Of a stretch of 64,000 nucleotides of DNA, positions 30,651 to 42,221 are shown piece after piece (position 1 is the first letter of the stretch; every line of letters starts with the position of its first letter). This DNA comes from Trichoplax adhaerens. Lineage: Eukaryota; Animalia; Placozoa. A model generated the notes under the pieces. That model was not told the origin of the DNA. It saw only the letters and a program-made list of their open reading frames with translations, and made no database searches. The stretch lies in contig NW_002060944.1 in the NCBI RefSeq assembly GCF_000150275.1, positions 3,510,152-3,574,151 of the forward strand, read 5' to 3'. The position numbers and the translations under genes are program-made.

Positions 30651-32876
30651 TTAAGACGTATCCATGGCCTCTACTCTCGTTGTCACGTCTACGTTTGATA
30701 ATGTCAGTTGTTTTTCTCCAAGAACACCTACAAAGAGAATTTGTTGATAGCAGTTGTTACGCACAGATGCGATTTAAATTCTAAATACTCAGTTCATGTA
30801 TACAAACCTGTAGTTCCTCTCTTATAACGATATTTTCCTTGCCTATACACATTAAAAATATTCCCAATTATTTATAACAATTCAAAAACCCATTCAACTG
30901 AAAGTATTACTTTAAGCATACCTGACGCCTTTTATGTTTGCTTCATCAAACGGGCGAATATAATCGGTCCCGTCTTTTGTTATTACGCAGAGATCAACAT
31001 TACTTCCCGAACCCTATTGATAATTTAGAAACATACAATTTGCATCAAACTTGGTAGCAGAAGTCAATCCATCCAGTGAATATCGTAAATTAAAAATTAC
31101 CAAATCATTAAAAATTCCAGCTGCAATTGCATCCCTAACTAGCTGCTTTGCTTCGTCTAACTGTTCAACATACTTTATGTTAGTATTGCAAAGACATCGT
31201 TAGCGGAAAATAGTAGGACTCTATTACCTCCATATTAACATGGTATCTATCTTCGAACACTGCCATAGCAGCAAGAGATCCAGAACCTAGCAAAATAAAT
31301 TTAAATTCCCAAATCAACGTTCAAATAGTTGAAAGGTTTTCAATTTCTTGAATTAGCATCATTAATAAACTAACCCATAGTTACGTAAGGCAGTTTATCA
31401 CTACTACCACGAGCATGAACTGTATACAAATGCGGGCCTGTAGAATCAACGCCACCAAGAACTAGGTAGGCACCAACATAACCTTGATATCTATGTCGAT
31501 TATACAAGAAAAGCGATGACTGACCATGTTCATGAGAAGTGATATAATCATACGATGAAATAGAATATTGTTGCAGACTATGTAAATCATCCCAAATTTG
31601 TAAATTCTTAAATCATTGCCAGCTATACCTAAACAACATTTGCTTCAGCATCGTCAAAGCCGCTACAACACGAGGCTGGAGGATAAAGAATATAAGTAAA
31701 CGTTATAGTTAACGTGAATTAGAAATAAATATCTATAACCAAGTGATCATTTTAGTGTGCCTGCAAGGAACCGTTTGATTAGGTAAGTAATACAAATTCC
31801 ACGTTCAGACTTACTTTTCTTTCGGTCGTTAGGCTGTGTAGTTCAATCTTAGACGAGATCAAACGTGTGACATACTCAGTATCAGCTGCAGTACCTGCGC
31901 CACAGCAGCTAGGTAATGAAACAGAAATCAGATTACTTATCTCAAATTATATGGTAAATAGTCAATGGTTCAAGTCATTAGCATCTTGTGTAAGAGGGTA
32001 CTTACTACATGTTTGGTGAAATATAGTGGATTTTACTGCAGTTTTTGTCAGCAATAAATGTTCCCTGTTAATATAAACATGATTAACCGTTACAAATGTA
32101 CATCGAGTCATCTCATGAGCCATCCAATTATTACTGGTAATCCAAATGGTGTGGATATTCCACTAGCGAATAGAGAAACAACTTACTTCACTTGCTCTCG
32201 TATCCGCTCCAAGGATAATCCCATCCTAATCCATGTGAAGGAAAAAAAAGACATGTAGTGGTTGTATTAACCTGTCTATATTGTCCGGTATCATACTCAA
32301 GAAAATCATATTCACTGTTCTATATCAGTAATAAGCTAAAAGATAGAATTCCACCCCAATCGGAGACAACTACTTTGTACTGATAGAATAGGCTTTTACA
32401 GTACGTTCACTCGTACCGCAGACTGTATAGTACAGTTGTCCAGTACGACAATATACAGTAAGCAACCTCATTGCTGTATGTGATTATTACTGTAGTCTTG
32501 ACTTCTTGCATTGGATATCTAAATGGAATTGATCGCCTTAATTACCTTGAATACAATCCCAGCAATTGTTGTACCGGTTTTTCTAGCTTTAGCGGCTTGA
32601 ATGCCCTTTTTAGCGAACATTTCATTGCTATATCCAGTCCATCATTATAGAGAAAAGACAAATTGAAACGTCATCATTGCTCAAGTCATTTTGTAATACA
32701 CAAGACATGAGCCCAAGGCGTATTTTTTTATAGCTAAATTCATGCATAAATCAATTGTAATATGTAAACTGTTTCTTTAATCATCGAATAGCACGTTTAT
32801 TCTACCCTAACATTTACCGATTAACATTATCGAAGGAGAATCCTCCTTGCGGAGAATCGAGTTCAATGGACGCCAT
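30651..32876 (-). CDS. PSMB7: Proteasome subunit beta type-7 (beta2, trypsin-like)
   Basis: [20 protein letters not shown]..., propeptide junction ARKTG|[81 protein letters not shown], end ...MDTS* (TAA 30651-30653). Confidence 0.97.
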
Positions 32877-33422: not shown

Positions 33423-34218
33423 AGAAATCGAGGAGAACCGAGAGGTCCATGTCTGCGATTAGTCCATGCACTTTTTGGGGAATTCAGTAGTCTGTAATAT
33501 GAGCCTTTCGGAGTAAATCGAGTGATGCATGTCCGTGATTAGTCCGTGCACTTTCCGCCTGCTTTGTACTTTTTAAATTTAGTAGTCTGAGATATGAACT
33601 ATAGAAGAAATCGAAGAGAACCAAGAGGTCCATGTCTGCGATTATTAGTCCATGCACTTTTTTTGTTGAATTAAGTAGTCTGCAATATGAGCCATTAGGA
33701 GAAAATCGAGTGATGCATGTCCGTGATTAGTCCGTGCACTTTCCGCCTGCTTTGTACTTTTTAAATTTAGTAGTCTGAGATATGAACTATAGAAGAAATC
33801 CAAGAGGTCCATGTCTGCGATTAAGTCCATGCACTTTTTTTGTTGAATTAAGTAGTCTGCAATATGAGCCATTAGGAGAAAATCGAGTGATGCATGTCCG
33901 TGATTAGTCCGTGCACTTTCCGCCTGCTTTGTACTTTTTAAATTTAGTAGTCTGGGATATGAACCACTAGAAGAAAACGAAGAGAACCAAGAGGTCCATG
34001 TCTGCGATTAGTCCATGCACTTTTTTTGTTGAATTAAGTAGTCTGCAATATGAGCCATTCGGAGTAAATCGAGTGATGCATGTCCGTGATTAGTCCGTGC
34101 ACTTTCCGCCTGCTTTGTACTTTTTAAATTTAGTAGTCTGGGATATGAACCACTAGAAGAAAACGTAGTGGTTCATGTCCGTGATGAGTTTATGCACTTT
34201 CTGGCTGCACTGTACTTT
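33423..34218. repeat. Tandem array, about 4 units of about 185 bp, each a dimer of two related ~90-bp monomers
   Basis: Units start near 33423, 33606, 33795 and 33973. Sub-monomers begin catgtctgcgattagtccatgcacttt and catgtccgtgattagtccgtgcacttt. Confidence 0.95.
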
Positions 34219-34800: not shown

Positions 34801-37800
34801 GGGCTAGATCCAAATCACCATCATGGCCGTGACTGACTGATCAATTCTGAGATGATCAAGAAATCAAAATAGTAGGACGGTTAATCTTTGGGAATCCCTG
34901 AAATTCTGGGCTATTATGATCCGGTCATTCCTTGCAAATACTTATTAATCATCATCAAAGCAATATATTCGATATTGTTGTTATTGTTATGTATGAACTT
35001 ACTTGAGCTAATACAATCAACCTTATGTAAGGTTCGGGTTACTCCAGATTAGTCACTGACGCAAAGAACTGAGAATACGCAAAGCTCTGTAAATTGTAAT
35101 TACTACCACTAATTGATTTATTGATTGAAAATATCTTTGATGTTACCATCTTGCTTTAGTGACCTATTATCCTACAGTTTTGATTGTAGAATGCTCATTA
35201 ACGCTTCTTAAATGACTACTGACCGCGTGCAACTTATAGATTTTGGATAAGGCTATAGTAAAGATTACCAATTTAAGCGTAAAACTATGCTTTATTTTAA
35301 GAAATGTTAGAATATCAAGACGTGCAGTTAGATATGGCACTTTCATGCGAAGGAAAACCAGACGAAGACTGCCCGCATTGGAATCGTACTGTTTAGCTTT
35401 ATGTATGTTGTTCTAACGCAACAACATATTGAGAACAAGAACTAGGACGATGGATTACTCCCTTCCACCGGTAGTTTACCATCTATTTGATATTCCTAAT
35501 TTGATACCTAATAAGCCCATTTACCGCGTTTTAGATAAATAAATAAATAGGTTAACGCCGCTGACTCCTTTGTTACCATTATTATTATCCAGCAGTTGTA
35601 ATTTTACCATGAAAAGTACTCCTTGGGAAAAGCCATGGCTTACGAATCTGAAACTTAAATTTTCTCATAAAATAAGTTACTATACCTTTATGATACTAGA
35701 TAATCAAAGAAATTTATGATAGTTTTTAAGTCACTTTATTTGCTTATAATTATAATTATCTTGCCTAATGACATATTCGTAAATTGGTAGATACAATTGT
35801 AGCTAAGGAGAAGGGAATACCCTTCGAACCAAATAAATTAACACCGTTATTTAAAGGGGGGACTTTTAACAAAAACTGTAATAAGAAATATAAGCCGATT
35901 CACTTTAATATAACCAGCGAAAATAAAAGGTAAAGCTTGTTGCGGTCATTACAGGTAATCTCGATTTGAACTATAGCCAAAACTTACGTATTACTGATTA
36001 ATATTGGATCAATTTATAGAAAATTTTTGTTTTTTTGAAATACAGGCTACGGAAGTGATAATAAAAATTGTGTCGAATTCTGTGTTACATCCCACCATTT
36101 TACTGTTAATAAAAAGCATGACAATGCTAGAACTTTTAGTAATGCTGCCATATATCTCGGATGTGCAGAACGAGTCCATCAAGGTGTTGTACCTAACGAA
36201 TTTAGGACGTGGCTATATGGAAGAGGCGCTTGGTGTCGTGGGCAGGAGGTTAAGCCTTTGGTAGTTGACATAACCAACTAATTCAGTACTAAATCTGTCA
36301 ACAATATTACTTATCCTGGATACTACAATTATGTGGATCCACGTCCCGCTTACAAACCAGGAACTATTGTAATGTATTCCTATCTTACTCTTCACGATAC
36401 GTACTAGTTGTAATGAAATGTGATCGTAAGCAAAATATATTTTTGTATAGCGTATTGTGTGATATTGTTATAATCATACACTATAGATACGATATTAAAC
36501 TAGTCAAATTGTGCGGCACATGTACGCTGTTGGTTAAGGCATTACCATTCTGCCTATCTAAATTATGTGACTATTCTAGATTGTCGGTTAATGACATTTA
36601 ATGACAGTAAATGCTTGCCTAGATAAAATACAGGTTTCCTGTGATGTAATTTATAAGTTTATAGTAATCTCCAATCCTTAATTTCTTGGGAGATTTTAAT
36701 ACATATTAAGCAATTTAAAGAGATAAACTAGCGCTTAGTAAGGTTCTATTTGCGATATTTTCATTTGTTGTCATCTTCCGATTTTCTCTATCTACTTTAT
36801 TCTTGTGTAATTTTAAACGAATATAAAAGCTGTGTTGGTGCAATAATAAAGTGTTGACTAATATACCCAAGTGTGGTACTAATTTGTTATGAGCCCCTCA
36901 AGTTAGTTTAACTTTCACGTTAAATTGCAGATATATATTGTCATATATCGTACAGTTAAAAGTATACTAGTATCATCTAGAGGTAAGTAAGAAATTTTTG
37001 ATTAGACAGTACAGTATGTTATCTCTCATGGAAGATATATCCATTGATTAACATTTTTTGGTTTCAATTTATATCATATTCTTTTATCATAATCCCATGC
37101 TACTATCTATAAAACATGTAAGGTATTGATCTACAATCAACTTATTATAGATTCATAATATGAAGCGGGCACAAATTTCCTCTATACAGATAGATGTATC
37201 GCTGTATCTACGGCGGTTTTGTATCTTAAAGAATCAATTACAGCTGAGATTACCTGAGTTTGCTGTTGTATGCGATTTAACTCTGAATAGTATCATGGTT
37301 AAATGTTCGTAACCTAGACAGTTACTAATTCATAGAATAAGTTCGATCGCTTTTCTGTTATTATAGTTATAAAATGTTGTCATTATAATTTAGCTAATCA
37401 TAATTTCAAGCAAGCTCCAACATACGGGAATTCAAGGAAATTCGTAATGATGTTGTTTGATGTCATTCTTCACTCCTATCATAACTCATAATTCGTTCAA
37501 ATACAACAATTTTGCAAATCACCATCAATATAACTTCATCGATTATAATTTGCCAAAATTATGTTATTCTGTATTTATATACGTAAAGTAAATATAATAG
37601 TGAACTAATGCATTTGCTAAAGATAAATTTAATAGAGAGAAAAGCTTTCAATGGAAAAGATAAATAGTTGATTTACTAAAACGAAGGATGACAGTATTTA
37701 AATGAGTTATTTCTATAAATTCAGAAATCAATTAGAATGACTACTGAAATCATCATATCCCTTAGTATATATTTCTTTAATAGGATAGTAACTCAGCGAT

Positions 37801-38141
37801 TCGATAAATTCCTGAGAATTCACTAAAGATATTGTGCTTCTGCCCTTAACTGCCTCATAATCTATGCTCAAGATAGGAATACGACTTGTATCTATTTATC
37901 TAACCTTTTCCAAATATTTTATTTGCTTGACAATATTTAAAAAATTGCTTTAGAGAAGGATTTTAATTGATGTGAACATTGCACATATATCAGCAACCCT
38001 ATCGCTAAATCAAACTTAAATAAATTAAAGTTTATTCTTACAGAAACCTTTCCAAAATAAGACCGGCATACTATGACCTTGAGTTAATTGCAATACAAAT
38101 TGGTTATACGTATAGTATAAGTATCTCTAATACAATAGTTC

Positions 38142-41100
38142 TTATCTTAATCTGCCAATATATCCGCCTATAATTCCCTCTCCAGAACAGCGATTAATAA
38201 ATGTAGTAGAAAACAAAGTAGAATTAAACAGATTGTACAGCGTTTTTCCTAGATTTCAGTGGAGCGCATCTGACTATATAGATAGTGTGATGACTTACCG
38301 CCAAATATTCTCCGCTGTATAAAAACGATAACAATATTAATTAATTTACATGTATTAATACGTTAGCTAACGAATGGCATTAGCTGTCGATTTTAGACTC
38401 TGTACTAGAAAATTATTGAAACTATTTACTAAATAAAGTAATTCACCAGCTTTCCCCTTACCCAATTTATATTTCCGCACCAAGTAGAATGACGATGGCG
38501 TGACCGGTAAGTGGTTGTTTTTGATTTATATTGACCATAAACAGTACTAATTCCACGATTAAAGAAAATGAATTATAAACAAGAAATGGAAGAATTCTCA
38601 TTGGTTATATGGCTAGAATTATGCTTCAATAGCTTTGATTAACTATTTTACTTATTTAATACGGCCAATTTACTCGTAATGATAATCGTACACTTGCGCA
38701 CGTAGAAATACTCACTGCAATATAGAAAATACCAATAGCGTGAACGCTACGCCAATAGCAATTGCTGGCAAAGTCCATGATGGATGCAATGGTACAACTT
38801 GATTTCCATGCCCTATAAATAGTACCAAGGAGAAAATTTAAATACGAGTCCTATACAGTAATGCATATAAACTGCTTTAATGTACAGTACAAATATACGT
38901 ATATACGAATATAATATACTGCGTATGATGCTTACTGCATTTCGCGGATGCTCAACATCAATTCAGCTGATAATCAATCATTATTACTAATATTATTACT
39001 AACTGAGGCTATAAAATATTCAATCGATTAATACAATGGTTAGGGGAATAAGCCTACATTCAAAGACAATCGGTTGACTTTGGGGACCATAAATGCCTGC
39101 ATCAGTCTTAGCTTGCATCTATATGTGTTGTAGGATAAAGGATTCTTTAGATCGATTGAAACGCAATGATGGATACAGAATGAAGAAGCAAAGACACACC
39201 TGTAGTATGTAAACATCCACTTTCGGGTTTGACTCCATGGAAGCATTAAATTCAAGCGTACCACCAGGTAATATATATTGATAGGTATATGGTCGGTCAT
39301 CGTTGCTTAAAGAATTGCCGACTTTCTTACGAAACATTGTATAGTTTAATATCTTATCTTTTACACAATCGATAGCCATGTTATTGCAGTATTTTAATGC
39401 CATCGTAAGATTAGCTAGCATAATTGGATGGATCATTATTCGATATCCGGTAATAACACCTCTTGTATGTTTTGGTGGTTCCCATCTTACATGAACACCA
39501 AAGGCTTTATCTATTTTGACCGATATTCGTTGAGGAGGATCCGCAGGAACTAAAATTCGCGAAAGTATACAATTAATTATTTATAAAGACCATTAATAAG
39601 ACTTTCATATTTTGGAAAAGTGTGATTATTTTTAGATTTGAGATTATATATAATTGTCATACTTCCAGGAGATGTTCGAATTTGCCTGATTGTACAAGAA
39701 GCTTTCTTTAATGCCATCTGATGTCCATCGTTGTTGTTAATTAGCAGCACAGGAATAACATCGATACGATAAATAGTGTAGGCTTGCACTTTTGTAAATA
39801 TAATTCTGTATTGTTTTGTTATATTGCCGTGCTTTTGGACAACAGTTTGACTATGTGGTATTTCATTTTTATTTTTTACTGCTTCGAGTGAAGTAAAGGA
39901 GACATTGTATTTTATAGCAGCAGTGTTTTCGATATGAAGTCCATTAAATTCTATTTCAACCGTATTCATCGTTACACGAATATGGTTTATTTCACATTCG
40001 GGTATGCCTTTTGTAAATAGAAATTGGAATAATACATAAGGTGAGTTTATGATAGCTTCTTCATCCTCTACAAAAATTTTTTATATGAAATTCGTCCGTA
40101 ATAATAGAAGATCGTCCCATCAATAGGTTAAAATTCGATCCAACTAAATGGATGTTCTTTAGATTTAATATAGCACTTCATAAAATTATTTCACTTACGG
40201 ATGCATTTATCGCTTCTAGCGATACTATCATAACCACAGTAGCAGTGGGTAGTAAAATTAAGAAAATTCTGCATTCCAGTTGGGCACCTGGCACATTTAT
40301 TATTTGAAACACTTGTCTTGTAATAGTTGAGCCGGCATTCTATATTACACAATTCAGATGAAAATATAAGACAGATAGAGATCGAAAACTATAATTACGA
40401 CTATTATATTTTCGGACATACGCTGACAGATATTATTTTGCAGCTCATGTCCGGCTTTGCAAGCACAGGATTGTAAATTTTGTGGTTTACTCCATGTTCC
40501 ATTTGGAAAGCAAGACATTATAGGTTGAACCTTGTCATCAACAAGTTGTGATTTACCAGTGCAACTGCCATTGCTGTAGGATACATTGGTGCCGGTCTGC
40601 TCTGTTGCAGCTGCTGGAAAATATACGTTGCCAATTTGTTTTGGATGACAAACTTTGTACCATACTTGTACATTTTGAATGATACTACATGAACCTTTCC
40701 CATCCAGAAATAGATACATTCCATTCATATTTTCTTGGACGGTTACAAATGCCGCAAATTTTCTATGTTGACCCAATAGTGATACTTTTCTTCCTTTTTG
40801 ATCGGCAAGTAAGCTACTTTCCTTAGCATGAATTATTTCTTCTAGATCTAATGTGTCTCTTATGCGGCTATATAATTCACTTTTCTAGTATTAAATGTAC
40901 GAGACCAAATTTAGTTTGTATGGTATTAGTTAACGAATAAAACTAACCTATTATAAATAATGCGCGTACATCAGTTCATATATTCGCGCGTAGATACTTG
41001 TATTTTTTAGCATCAAATACAATATAGCATTATCAAAAATTGAATAATTCTACACCTGAAAACACAAAATCTTTTCTAATCTTCGATCTGAAAAGTTGCA

Positions 41101-42221
41101 ATTTTATAAAGTACCGGTACCTAATGCAGTAGCTTACTAGAGGCTTAACTCTTAAGGCAAGTCACGTTGAAAGATATTTTCCTAATGTTGAATAGATGTA
41201 AGATCTAACGGTTAAGAACGAACCTCACAAAATTGGTTACCGATATTTTCTTGAAATTGTAGCCCGATGAAGTAAAGAAAGCTTGTACAATTTTTTGAAC
41301 GAATGGAGCAATTGCTTTTAGTCGAATACTCTATATTAACGTAGACTTTCTTTGCAACTCCAAAAGGAATATATGGAGAAATTAACCAAGCTCGTTGATG
41401 ATGACCTTGATAACATATGGTGTATTTGCCGACCGTTTCGTTAAGAAATTTTGTATAAGCCCACTAGAAATATAATGTTGAAATCTTTTCTTAAAAAGTG
41501 TAATAAACCTGCAGAACTACGACCTATAATGCTACCAACTCAGTTTTTATAGCATTAATTTTGTAAATATTACAATGTATATAGAGAGAGAATCTGTTGC
41601 AGTTTCTGTAGGTCAATCAAGACTATGCTATCGATTCTATCAAATACGGCACTTTAATTCTATATGATAATCGACAGTGCCCAGTGACTTTTATGTTTGA
41701 TGAATTTTTTATACTGCAAGGCTTGCAGTATCAAAATTGCGACGTAGCGATATCGGTATATGGACGTATGGTATATTGGCATAGGTATAAAATAGGTGAA
41801 TCGAGTTGTTATCATAGCAAACCGCAGATTGTTATCGACTTACATTTCCGAGATGACCAGGAGGGCTTGTGCATGATTTCCACCCAGGCCAGCCCAAATT
41901 TGCTGCTTGATATTTATTCGTATCGAGTAAAAGTTCTAGACATTAAAAAATTAAACAAATTGAAATGATAAAATTATAACAGCCTTCTAGCAATATGTCC
42001 TGGTCGTATATCAATCACAACTGAGGAAAGCAGAACGCCAAGATAAGATAGTTTAATCTAATCGTTGTTAGACCAGCAGTTCTTCCGTATAATTACTAAA
42101 CTGATTACTATATCGGCCAATGAATGCAATAACTTGAGTAACATCAAAGTTTACCTTTAGCAGCTAAGGTGTAAGAACTATGAACGAGCAGAAGATAGAA
42201 GAAAGCCGTAAAAGTCTTCAT
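38142..42221 (-). CDS. Eph-receptor-like type I membrane protein lacking a kinase domain (SP, Eph LBD, Cys-rich/EGF-like, 2x FN3, TM, short tail)
   Basis: Signal peptide MKTFTAFFYLLLVHSSYTLAAK. LBD: ELLLDTNKYQAANLGW..., YTICYQGHHQRAWLISPYIPFGVAKKVYVNIEYSTKSNC, GMYLFLDGKGSCSIIQNVQVWYKVC. Cys-rich region: GSC...CFPNGTW...CACKAGHE...C|ECRLNYYK...CARCP. Two FN3 domains (VHVRWEPPKHTRGVITGYRI). TM: TLPAIAIGVAFTLLVFSIL. The putative last exons end ...RRIFGGGYIGRLR* at 38142, and these 3' exons are tentative. Confidence 0.8.

Follow-up and report, generated by a model that had tools for sequence, protein, structure and literature searches.

A stretch of 64,000 nucleotides of the Trichoplax adhaerens genome (C1413:3510152-3574151; hereafter the window) carries on its minus strand, from an ATG at 42221 to a stop codon at 38144-38142, a gene for an Eph-like protein from which the Eph kinase is missing. 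The genome assembly comprises 105.6 Mb in 1414 contigs, with ~32% G+C. The best overall explanation of our data is that this is probably a stand-alone gene for a type-I membrane glycoprotein of ~620 to 690 residues, consisting of a full Eph ectodomain, a transmembrane (TM) helix, and a short non-catalytic tail. The gene has the ectodomain build that defines the Eph family, namely a ligand-binding domain (LBD), a Cys-rich domain (CRD) with an EGF-like module, two FN3 domains, and a single-pass TM helix, and exons for the kinase, the juxtamembrane (JM) region, and SAM are absent from the locus. A preliminary description made from the letters of the window had read the gene as a genomically encoded, kinase-less, and divergent Eph-type membrane protein, and at the level of the genome that core reading holds.

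The ectodomain was examined in domain, profile, and fold searches run exon by exon; the joined exons were used for frame, length, hydropathy, and tail variants, and exon pieces were concatenated for the phylogenetic tree. All junctions of the model were GT-AG with the reading frame kept, giving nine consecutive open exons. The Ephrin_lbd profile (PF01404), on which the preliminary description had made its Eph assignment depend, matched two exons, at E 1.7e-12 (41215-41463; profile positions 24-97, in exon 3) and at E 8.9e-10 (40357-40884), both above the 27-bit cut-off. Further matches were to Ephrin_CRD in exon 4 (E 5.5e-5; 23.5 bits, below the 27-bit cut-off), to Ephrin_rec_like in exon 5 (E 6.1e-5; 23.2 bits against a cut-off of 23.1), and to fn3 at 39122-39580 (E 7.8e-5; 23.3 bits, below the 25-bit cut-off). 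The phase-1 junction of exon 5 yields a C-x-x-C...YYK pattern. Exon 4 also matched the solved ectodomains of EphA2, EphA4, and EphB2 (E 2e-9 to 4e-7), and its match to the EphA2 structures (E 2.2e-9) ran across the CRD and stopped exactly at the exon end. Neither exon 2 alone nor the first FN3 domain (exon 6) gave a Pfam match. For exon 6, AlphaFold predicted an eight-strand sandwich at a predicted local distance difference test score (pLDDT) of 77, and the Foldseek matches were overwhelmingly FN3 domains. Furthermore, a six-sequence profile of the first FN3 domain, built from the window gene, an orthologue fragment, three paralogues, and the complete Eph of this genome (all described below), matched the first FN3 domain of EphA4 at E 0.003. 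Hydropathy showed a sole strong hydrophobic stretch besides the signal peptide, at approximately residues 600 to 620 (peak near residues 599-604, counted as the start of a 19-residue window) and followed by basic residues. A genome scan with Pfam EphA2_TM gave no significant match, and none at the Eph-like locus. The signal peptide, LBD, Cys-rich/EGF-like region, two FN3 domains, and TM helix each lay on the minus strand where the preliminary description had placed them.

Several searches upheld the further claim that no kinase motif follows downstream. When tblastn was queried with exons of the Eph gene of this genome (JM, six for the kinase, and SAM) and with four of its single-exon tyrosine kinases (TKs), no match in the 64 kb was better than E 0.05, and the SAM exon reached E 0.34. 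A TK profile built from the same four single-exon kinases was run on every one of the window's 3571 open segments and gave a best E of 0.4; as a positive control, it picked up the kinase exons, which are split, at two control loci, with E 1e-5 to 1e-38. Scanning the whole genome with PF07714 produced 155 matches, 0 of them in the window, with the nearest on the contig ~476 kb away. The window itself is gap-free (no N). Kinase-like sequence of any kind was not found at the locus by tblastn or the TK profile, and there is accordingly no retained pseudokinase fold. In addition, PNGase F-like exons on the plus strand (35543-36278) converge on the 3' end of the Eph-like gene and thus leave only ~1.5 to 2 kb for it.

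The preliminary description had raised the possibility that the gene belongs to an expanded family, and a genome search bore this out, giving four kinase-less Eph-ectodomain genes (the window gene and three in C1410) and one complete Eph (C1407). The Eph kinase and SAM model Tadh_12344 of Krishnan et al. maps to C1407:2555-2557 kb and covers the JM region, kinase, and SAM only. Directly upstream and on the same strand, we found LBD, CRD, EGF-like, two FN3, PSW-motif TM, and JM exons; the published model does not include those that encode the ectodomain. Pfam support for this complete gene was strong for kinase and SAM and weak to strong across the ectodomain, with a barely recognisable LBD (E 0.025, 15 bits), and it contains the one Eph JM region found genome-wide. 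Another candidate for an Eph kinase, at C1410:7454.8-7456 kb, was rejected as a different receptor tyrosine kinase. The three C1410 genes are clustered within ~30 kb, and neither kinase nor JM nor SAM was matched in the ~7 kb or more downstream of each; the only gap in these flanks lies 7.4 kb past the TM exon of one gene. Gly and Ala are abundant in their TM helices, after which comes a motif of the LKFG or VKL type. Identity is 25-44% among the four kinase-less paralogues and 25-36% between the C1410 genes and the window gene, whose ectodomain is 25-35% identical to that of the kinase-bearing paralogue. In a tree built from the LBD, CRD, and EGF exons and including 32 outgroup Ephs, the placozoan copies grouped together, with a value of 86 in the Shimodaira-Hasegawa-like approximate likelihood ratio test (SH-aLRT) on a saturated tree. 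This tree does not tell one kinase loss from two, nor does it order the complete Eph, the window gene, and the C1410 trio.

Among the genes checked, the intron just past the TM helix is shared. A phase-2 donor a few codons past the TM helix is common to the window gene, paralogues B and C, and the complete Eph, and Tadh_56933 (paralogue A) is modelled with one spliced terminal mini-exon. From these exon boundaries, the post-TM phase-2 intron can be read as ancestral, with the kinase-less genes apparently carrying only short terminal exons past it. The window gene would then have originated by duplication of an Eph gene in the placozoan lineage, followed by loss of everything past this intron.

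Sequences from outside this genome indicate that the ectodomain has been maintained. An exhaustive search of representative proteins with exon 4 gave 137 matches, of which two were close, both of them short metagenome fragments (P0001 and P0002). P0001, with 54% identity to exon 4, lies on a 2160-base metagenome contig (L014; ENA ERZ23499115 scaffold_23539), and P0002 is a fragment of a C1410-type paralogue on a 940-base contig (L017; ENA ERZ27264358 k141_782700). These two contigs also reveal DNA of other placozoans in public environmental assemblies. Four orthologous exons in a row (LBD, LBD/CRD, EGF-like, and first FN3) lie on L014, with 49 to 68% amino-acid identity, specifically 68% for exon 3 (4/4 Cys kept), 61% for exon 5, and 49% for exon 6. 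Over 391 codons, the nonsynonymous and synonymous rates between L014 and the window gene (dN and dS) were 0.28 and 1.31, giving a dN/dS of 0.22, and 18 of 19 Cys were kept. Thus, purifying selection has acted on the ectodomain in two or more placozoan lineages that are well separated. Both contigs stop short of the TM helix. The exon of the second FN3 domain had no match among JGI metagenome contigs. Word searches of a 5.8-billion-protein set with the second FN3 and LBD/CRD exons also returned none; they were limited to proteins of 0.55 to 1.75 times the query length, a range that hides full-length models, so that this blank says little.

A non-ephrin ligand had been suggested for this protein, and the present data fit that suggestion. 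The ephrin domain was not found in a six-frame scan of the genome, a result that proves little alone because the control genomes could give no signal. We take Arg103 of EphA2 to sit two residues before the second LBD Cys (Cys105). The equivalent position is Ser in the window gene, Leu in the orthologue, and Gln or Ile in the paralogues, and the part of exon 4 expected to hold the J-K loop gave no alignment to EphA2. In EphA2, Arg103 forms a salt bridge with Glu119 of ephrin-A1 (PMC8880657), and a placozoan ephrin was not found in two published surveys (PMC6485061, PMC6993872). Given the lack of an ephrin, the lack of an Arg103-type hot spot, and the unalignable J-K region, these sequence comparisons suggest that the partner of the Eph-like ectodomain is likely not an ephrin.

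Whatever its partner, the protein would have no catalytic activity itself and would act at cell contacts through its ectodomain alone. EphA7 truncated isoforms mix with full-length Ephs and shift the outcome from repulsion to adhesion. By analogy, the most likely reading, offered tentatively, is that the window protein may join the sole kinase-bearing Eph via Eph-Eph ectodomain contacts, as a cis clustering modulator or a trans partner. We consider this partnership because Eph ectodomains bind each other and because kinase-less or kinase-dead vertebrate Ephs mix with active ones. Joining the kinase-bearing Eph would tune adhesion against repulsion, as for the EphA7 truncated isoforms, EphB6, and EphA10. 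Contacts between Eph ectodomains are described in PMC8508685 and bioRxiv 10.1101/2021.04.11.439330. In a stronger form that we regard as improbable, the four kinase-less ectodomains would be trans ligands or obligate co-receptors of the sole kinase-bearing Eph, replacing lost ephrins. If so, the genome would encode an Eph-Eph contact-signalling pair, and the paralogues could serve as a small code of recognition by which cells are sorted in this animal of few cell types.

Several points weigh against this overall explanation. Binding of the Eph-like ectodomain to the complete Eph is hypothetical, and expression of the gene and its exact tail are presumptive; in the text examined of two placozoan cell-atlas papers (PMC10580291, including its supplements, and PMC11452194), neither Eph nor gene 53296 is named. 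Because L014 ends before the TM helix, the conservation seen across placozoans concerns the ectodomain of the window gene. The grouping of the placozoan copies rests on the saturated tree, in which branch lengths reach 10. Finally, the four kinase-less genes have no motif in common in their tails, which makes a shared cytoplasmic function doubtful.

Alternatively, the window protein may be an independent adhesion or recognition molecule with a non-Eph partner and no functional link to the kinase-bearing Eph, which we regard as the principal competing account though a rather unlikely one. Its partner could be the secreted MSP domain of VAP, which Arcas et al. proposed as an alternative Trichoplax ligand, some other protein of the cell surface, or a ligand from microbes or food, and any signalling would pass through an unrelated co-receptor. 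Four fast-diverging paralogues, three of them close together in C1410, form a pattern typical of recognition families. Furthermore, the window gene has the genome's best Ephrin_lbd scores (45 and 38 bits, versus 27-29 for two C1410 copies and 15 for the complete Eph), which implies that its LBD is constrained on its own account. However, Eph-Eph ectodomain contacts are known, and a partnership with the complete Eph is equally open.

The cytoplasmic end of the protein is a separate matter. Exons 1-9 are firm and exons 10-12 are tentative, as judged from splice sites and reading frame. Five frame-compatible 3' ends give 1 to 65 cytoplasmic residues and a protein of 619 to 687 residues; none of these variants leaves room for a kinase. 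The basic, Tyr-containing tail of the preliminary description could be reproduced with GT-AG sites, but such a tail, here ~40 residues long, is one of the five. If the transcript is unspliced past exon 10, a stop follows at ~38430, and if intron 9 is retained, a stop follows one codon past the TM exon. The modelled C-terminus is unlike a PDZ-binding end. An AATAAA lies at 38036, ~100 bases past the stop, and is weak evidence; poly(A) hexamers are too common here, at 2.5 per kb, for the 3' end to be decided by them.

The tail exons might therefore be unreal, with an mRNA that ends in or just past intron 9, or after exon 10, to give a nearly tail-less tethered ectodomain. Read-through of the GTGAGT donor meets an immediate TGA, an ATTAAA stands at 38660, 56 bases downstream of that donor, and exons 10 to 12 are without homology support, exon 10 being unmatched at the paralogues. 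Nevertheless, paralogues B and C and the complete Eph all keep the strong phase-2 donor, and paralogue A is modelled with a spliced terminal mini-exon of its own. A stop codon inside a GTAAGT or GTGAGT donor simply follows from the consensus, and the hexamer density noted above lessens the weight of the ATTAAA. On balance, we think a tail-less end rather unlikely.

A decaying or silent duplicate, in which an Eph copy minus its 3' half is becoming a pseudogene, appears quite improbable. The kinase half is indeed missing, the public models are truncated, and no annotated protein was found for the FN3 or LBD exons within the length range of the word searches. These features are set against nine consecutive open exons with GT-AG sites, a dN/dS well below 1 at a dS of ~1.3 with nearly all Cys retained, and three paralogues that keep the same build. 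An assembly or model artefact, in which kinase exons are misplaced, far off, or trans-spliced, is very improbable: although the assembly is of a 2008 type and gapped elsewhere and the published Tadh_12344 kinase model is without an ectodomain, the window is gap-free, the single Eph JM region and the nearest PF07714 match on the contig lie elsewhere, a convergent gene lies 1.5 to 2 kb past the stop, and Tadh_12344, preceded in C1407 by LBD-to-TM exons that belong to it, is thus no orphan kinase.

The gene itself has been reported before, as an "Eph", through the truncated model Tadh_53296. Translated exons 1-4 correspond to Tadh_53296 under "Ephs in Placozoans" in Additional file 2 of Krishnan et al. 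2019 (PMC6485061); exon 1, whose donor leaves 1 base of a split codon, is the start of that model, which runs past exon 4 into intron 4 and for that reason ends there. The same survey reported three Trichoplax "Ephs" (12344, 53296, and 56933) and no ephrin, with several of the recovered models fragmentary. Arcas et al. 2020 (PMC6993872) reported two Trichoplax Ephs (B3RWY9 and B3RNU8) and described the placozoan Eph as an orphan receptor, with VAP as its proposed ligand. In the literature examined, we found no description of the kinase-less build, the four-gene set, or the kinase model's own ectodomain. Two evolutionary surveys count the window gene and Tadh_56933 as placozoan "Ephs", and one argues from those genes that early Ephs signalled forward through the kinase, with VAP as a possible ligand. 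The annotation errors (Tadh_53296 truncated; Tadh_12344 minus its ectodomain exons) affect published domain counts. If our reading is true, that picture would change for placozoans: they would have a single signalling Eph, encoded by a fifth gene whose LBD is hard to recognise, alongside four Eph ectodomains that lack catalysis, and no ephrin, and Trichoplax would be a natural system for studying what an Eph ectodomain does without ephrin or kinase, be it Eph-Eph contact, adhesion, or binding of another ligand.

Table 1. Exons of the Eph-like gene in the window and related Eph genes elsewhere in the Trichoplax genome
Feature	Position	Strand	Support or content
Exon 1, start codon and signal peptide	42155..42221	-	Open frame, hydrophobic N-terminus, GT donor
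Exon 2, LBD start (LLDT...LGW block)	41844..41935	-	AG/GT sites; agrees with published model
Exon 3, central Eph LBD with conserved Cys pair	41224..41463	-	Ephrin_lbd E 1.7e-12
Exon 4, LBD end and sushi-like Cys-rich domain	40422..40884	-	Ephrin_lbd E 8.9e-10, Ephrin_CRD E 5.5e-5
Exon 5, EGF-like Ephrin_rec_like module	40199..40339	-	PF07699 E 6.1e-5
Exon 6, first FN3	39663..40007	-	AlphaFold, Foldseek, profile match to EphA4 FN3-1
Exon 7, main part of second FN3, long insert	39200..39549	-	Pfam fn3 E 7.8e-5; AG/GT sites
Exon 8, last strand of second FN3	39058..39118	-	Frame-compatible AG/GT; typical FN3 G-strand pattern by eye
Exon 9, PSW-motif stalk and TM helix	38716..38812	-	Hydropathy; phase-2 GTGAGT donor
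Exon 10 (tentative), basic Tyr-containing cytoplasmic stretch	38462..38546	-	First frame-compatible acceptor past TM exon; GTAAGG donor
Exon 11 (tentative), 16-base micro-exon	38299..38314	-	Good acceptor, GTAAGT donor; otherwise unsupported
Exon 12 (tentative), last codons and stop	38142..38167	-	Acceptors 38179 and 38248 reach same frame and stop
Complete Eph receptor gene	C1407:2550.2-2557.2 kb (L012:5277-8840, L013:1-2193)	+	LBD, CRD, EGF-like, two FN3, TM, JM, kinase, SAM
Kinase-less Eph-ectodomain gene	C1410:7853.3-7859.6 kb	-	LBD, CRD, EGF-like, FN3, TM
Kinase-less Eph-ectodomain gene, Tadh_56933 (paralogue A)	C1410:7869.2-7873.3 kb	-	LBD, CRD, EGF-like, FN3, TM
Kinase-less Eph-ectodomain gene	C1410:7879.9-7883.2 kb	+	LBD, CRD, EGF-like, FN3, TM; without second LBD Cys pair

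Other features of the window lie beyond the 3' end of the Eph-like gene. The convergent PNGase F-like gene has an N-glycanase_N exon at 35543-35716 (plus strand; E 0.0023) and an N-glycanase_C exon at 36039-36278 (plus strand; E 2.9e-16). This family is best known from bacteria, and the gene could be an old horizontal transfer or a member of an under-annotated animal family. Between it and the upstream region of a proteasome beta-subunit gene is a tandem repeat (33441-34204; period ~177-186, 4.2 copies, 90% matches). The proteasome gene itself (31017-32160, minus strand) matched Pfam Proteasome at E 4.5e-6 on one exon; PSMB7 is the label given in the preliminary description.

Compared with canonical EphA and EphB receptors, the window gene has the common ectodomain order and single TM helix, with a PSW motif before it, but is without the juxtamembrane tyrosines, kinase, SAM, PDZ-binding end, and Arg103-type hot spot, in an animal without an ephrin. 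With the complete Eph in C1407 it has in common the phase-2 intron just past the TM helix. Tadh_56933 and the other C1410 genes are alike in domain order, TM helix, short tail, and lack of a downstream kinase; they differ in having an LKFG-type end and a Gly/Ala-rich TM helix, whereas the window gene has a PSW-type stalk. An Eph-like fragment from Salpingoeca urceolata, a species with an ephrin-like gene, contains an LBD and fn3 and no kinase (Krishnan et al. 2019, PMC6485061). Both that fragment and the window gene combine LBD and FN3 without a TK in a lineage outside Bilateria and Cnidaria; however, the former is a possibly incomplete transcriptome fragment, whereas the lack of a kinase in the window gene is shown directly by genome context. 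The kinase-truncated isoforms of the EphA7-T1/T2 type (Ciossek et al. 1999, as cited in PMC6993872) resemble the window protein in joining an anchored full ectodomain to a short non-catalytic tail, but they come from a kinase-bearing gene, and the window locus has no kinase exons. EphB6 and EphA10, which according to PMC6993872 have no catalytic output and presumably signal by associating with other members of the family, retain the whole kinase fold and SAM, whereas the window protein has neither. The window gene would thus represent, as a stand-alone gene in the genome, what vertebrates have in the form of kinase-truncated isoforms and pseudokinase Ephs.

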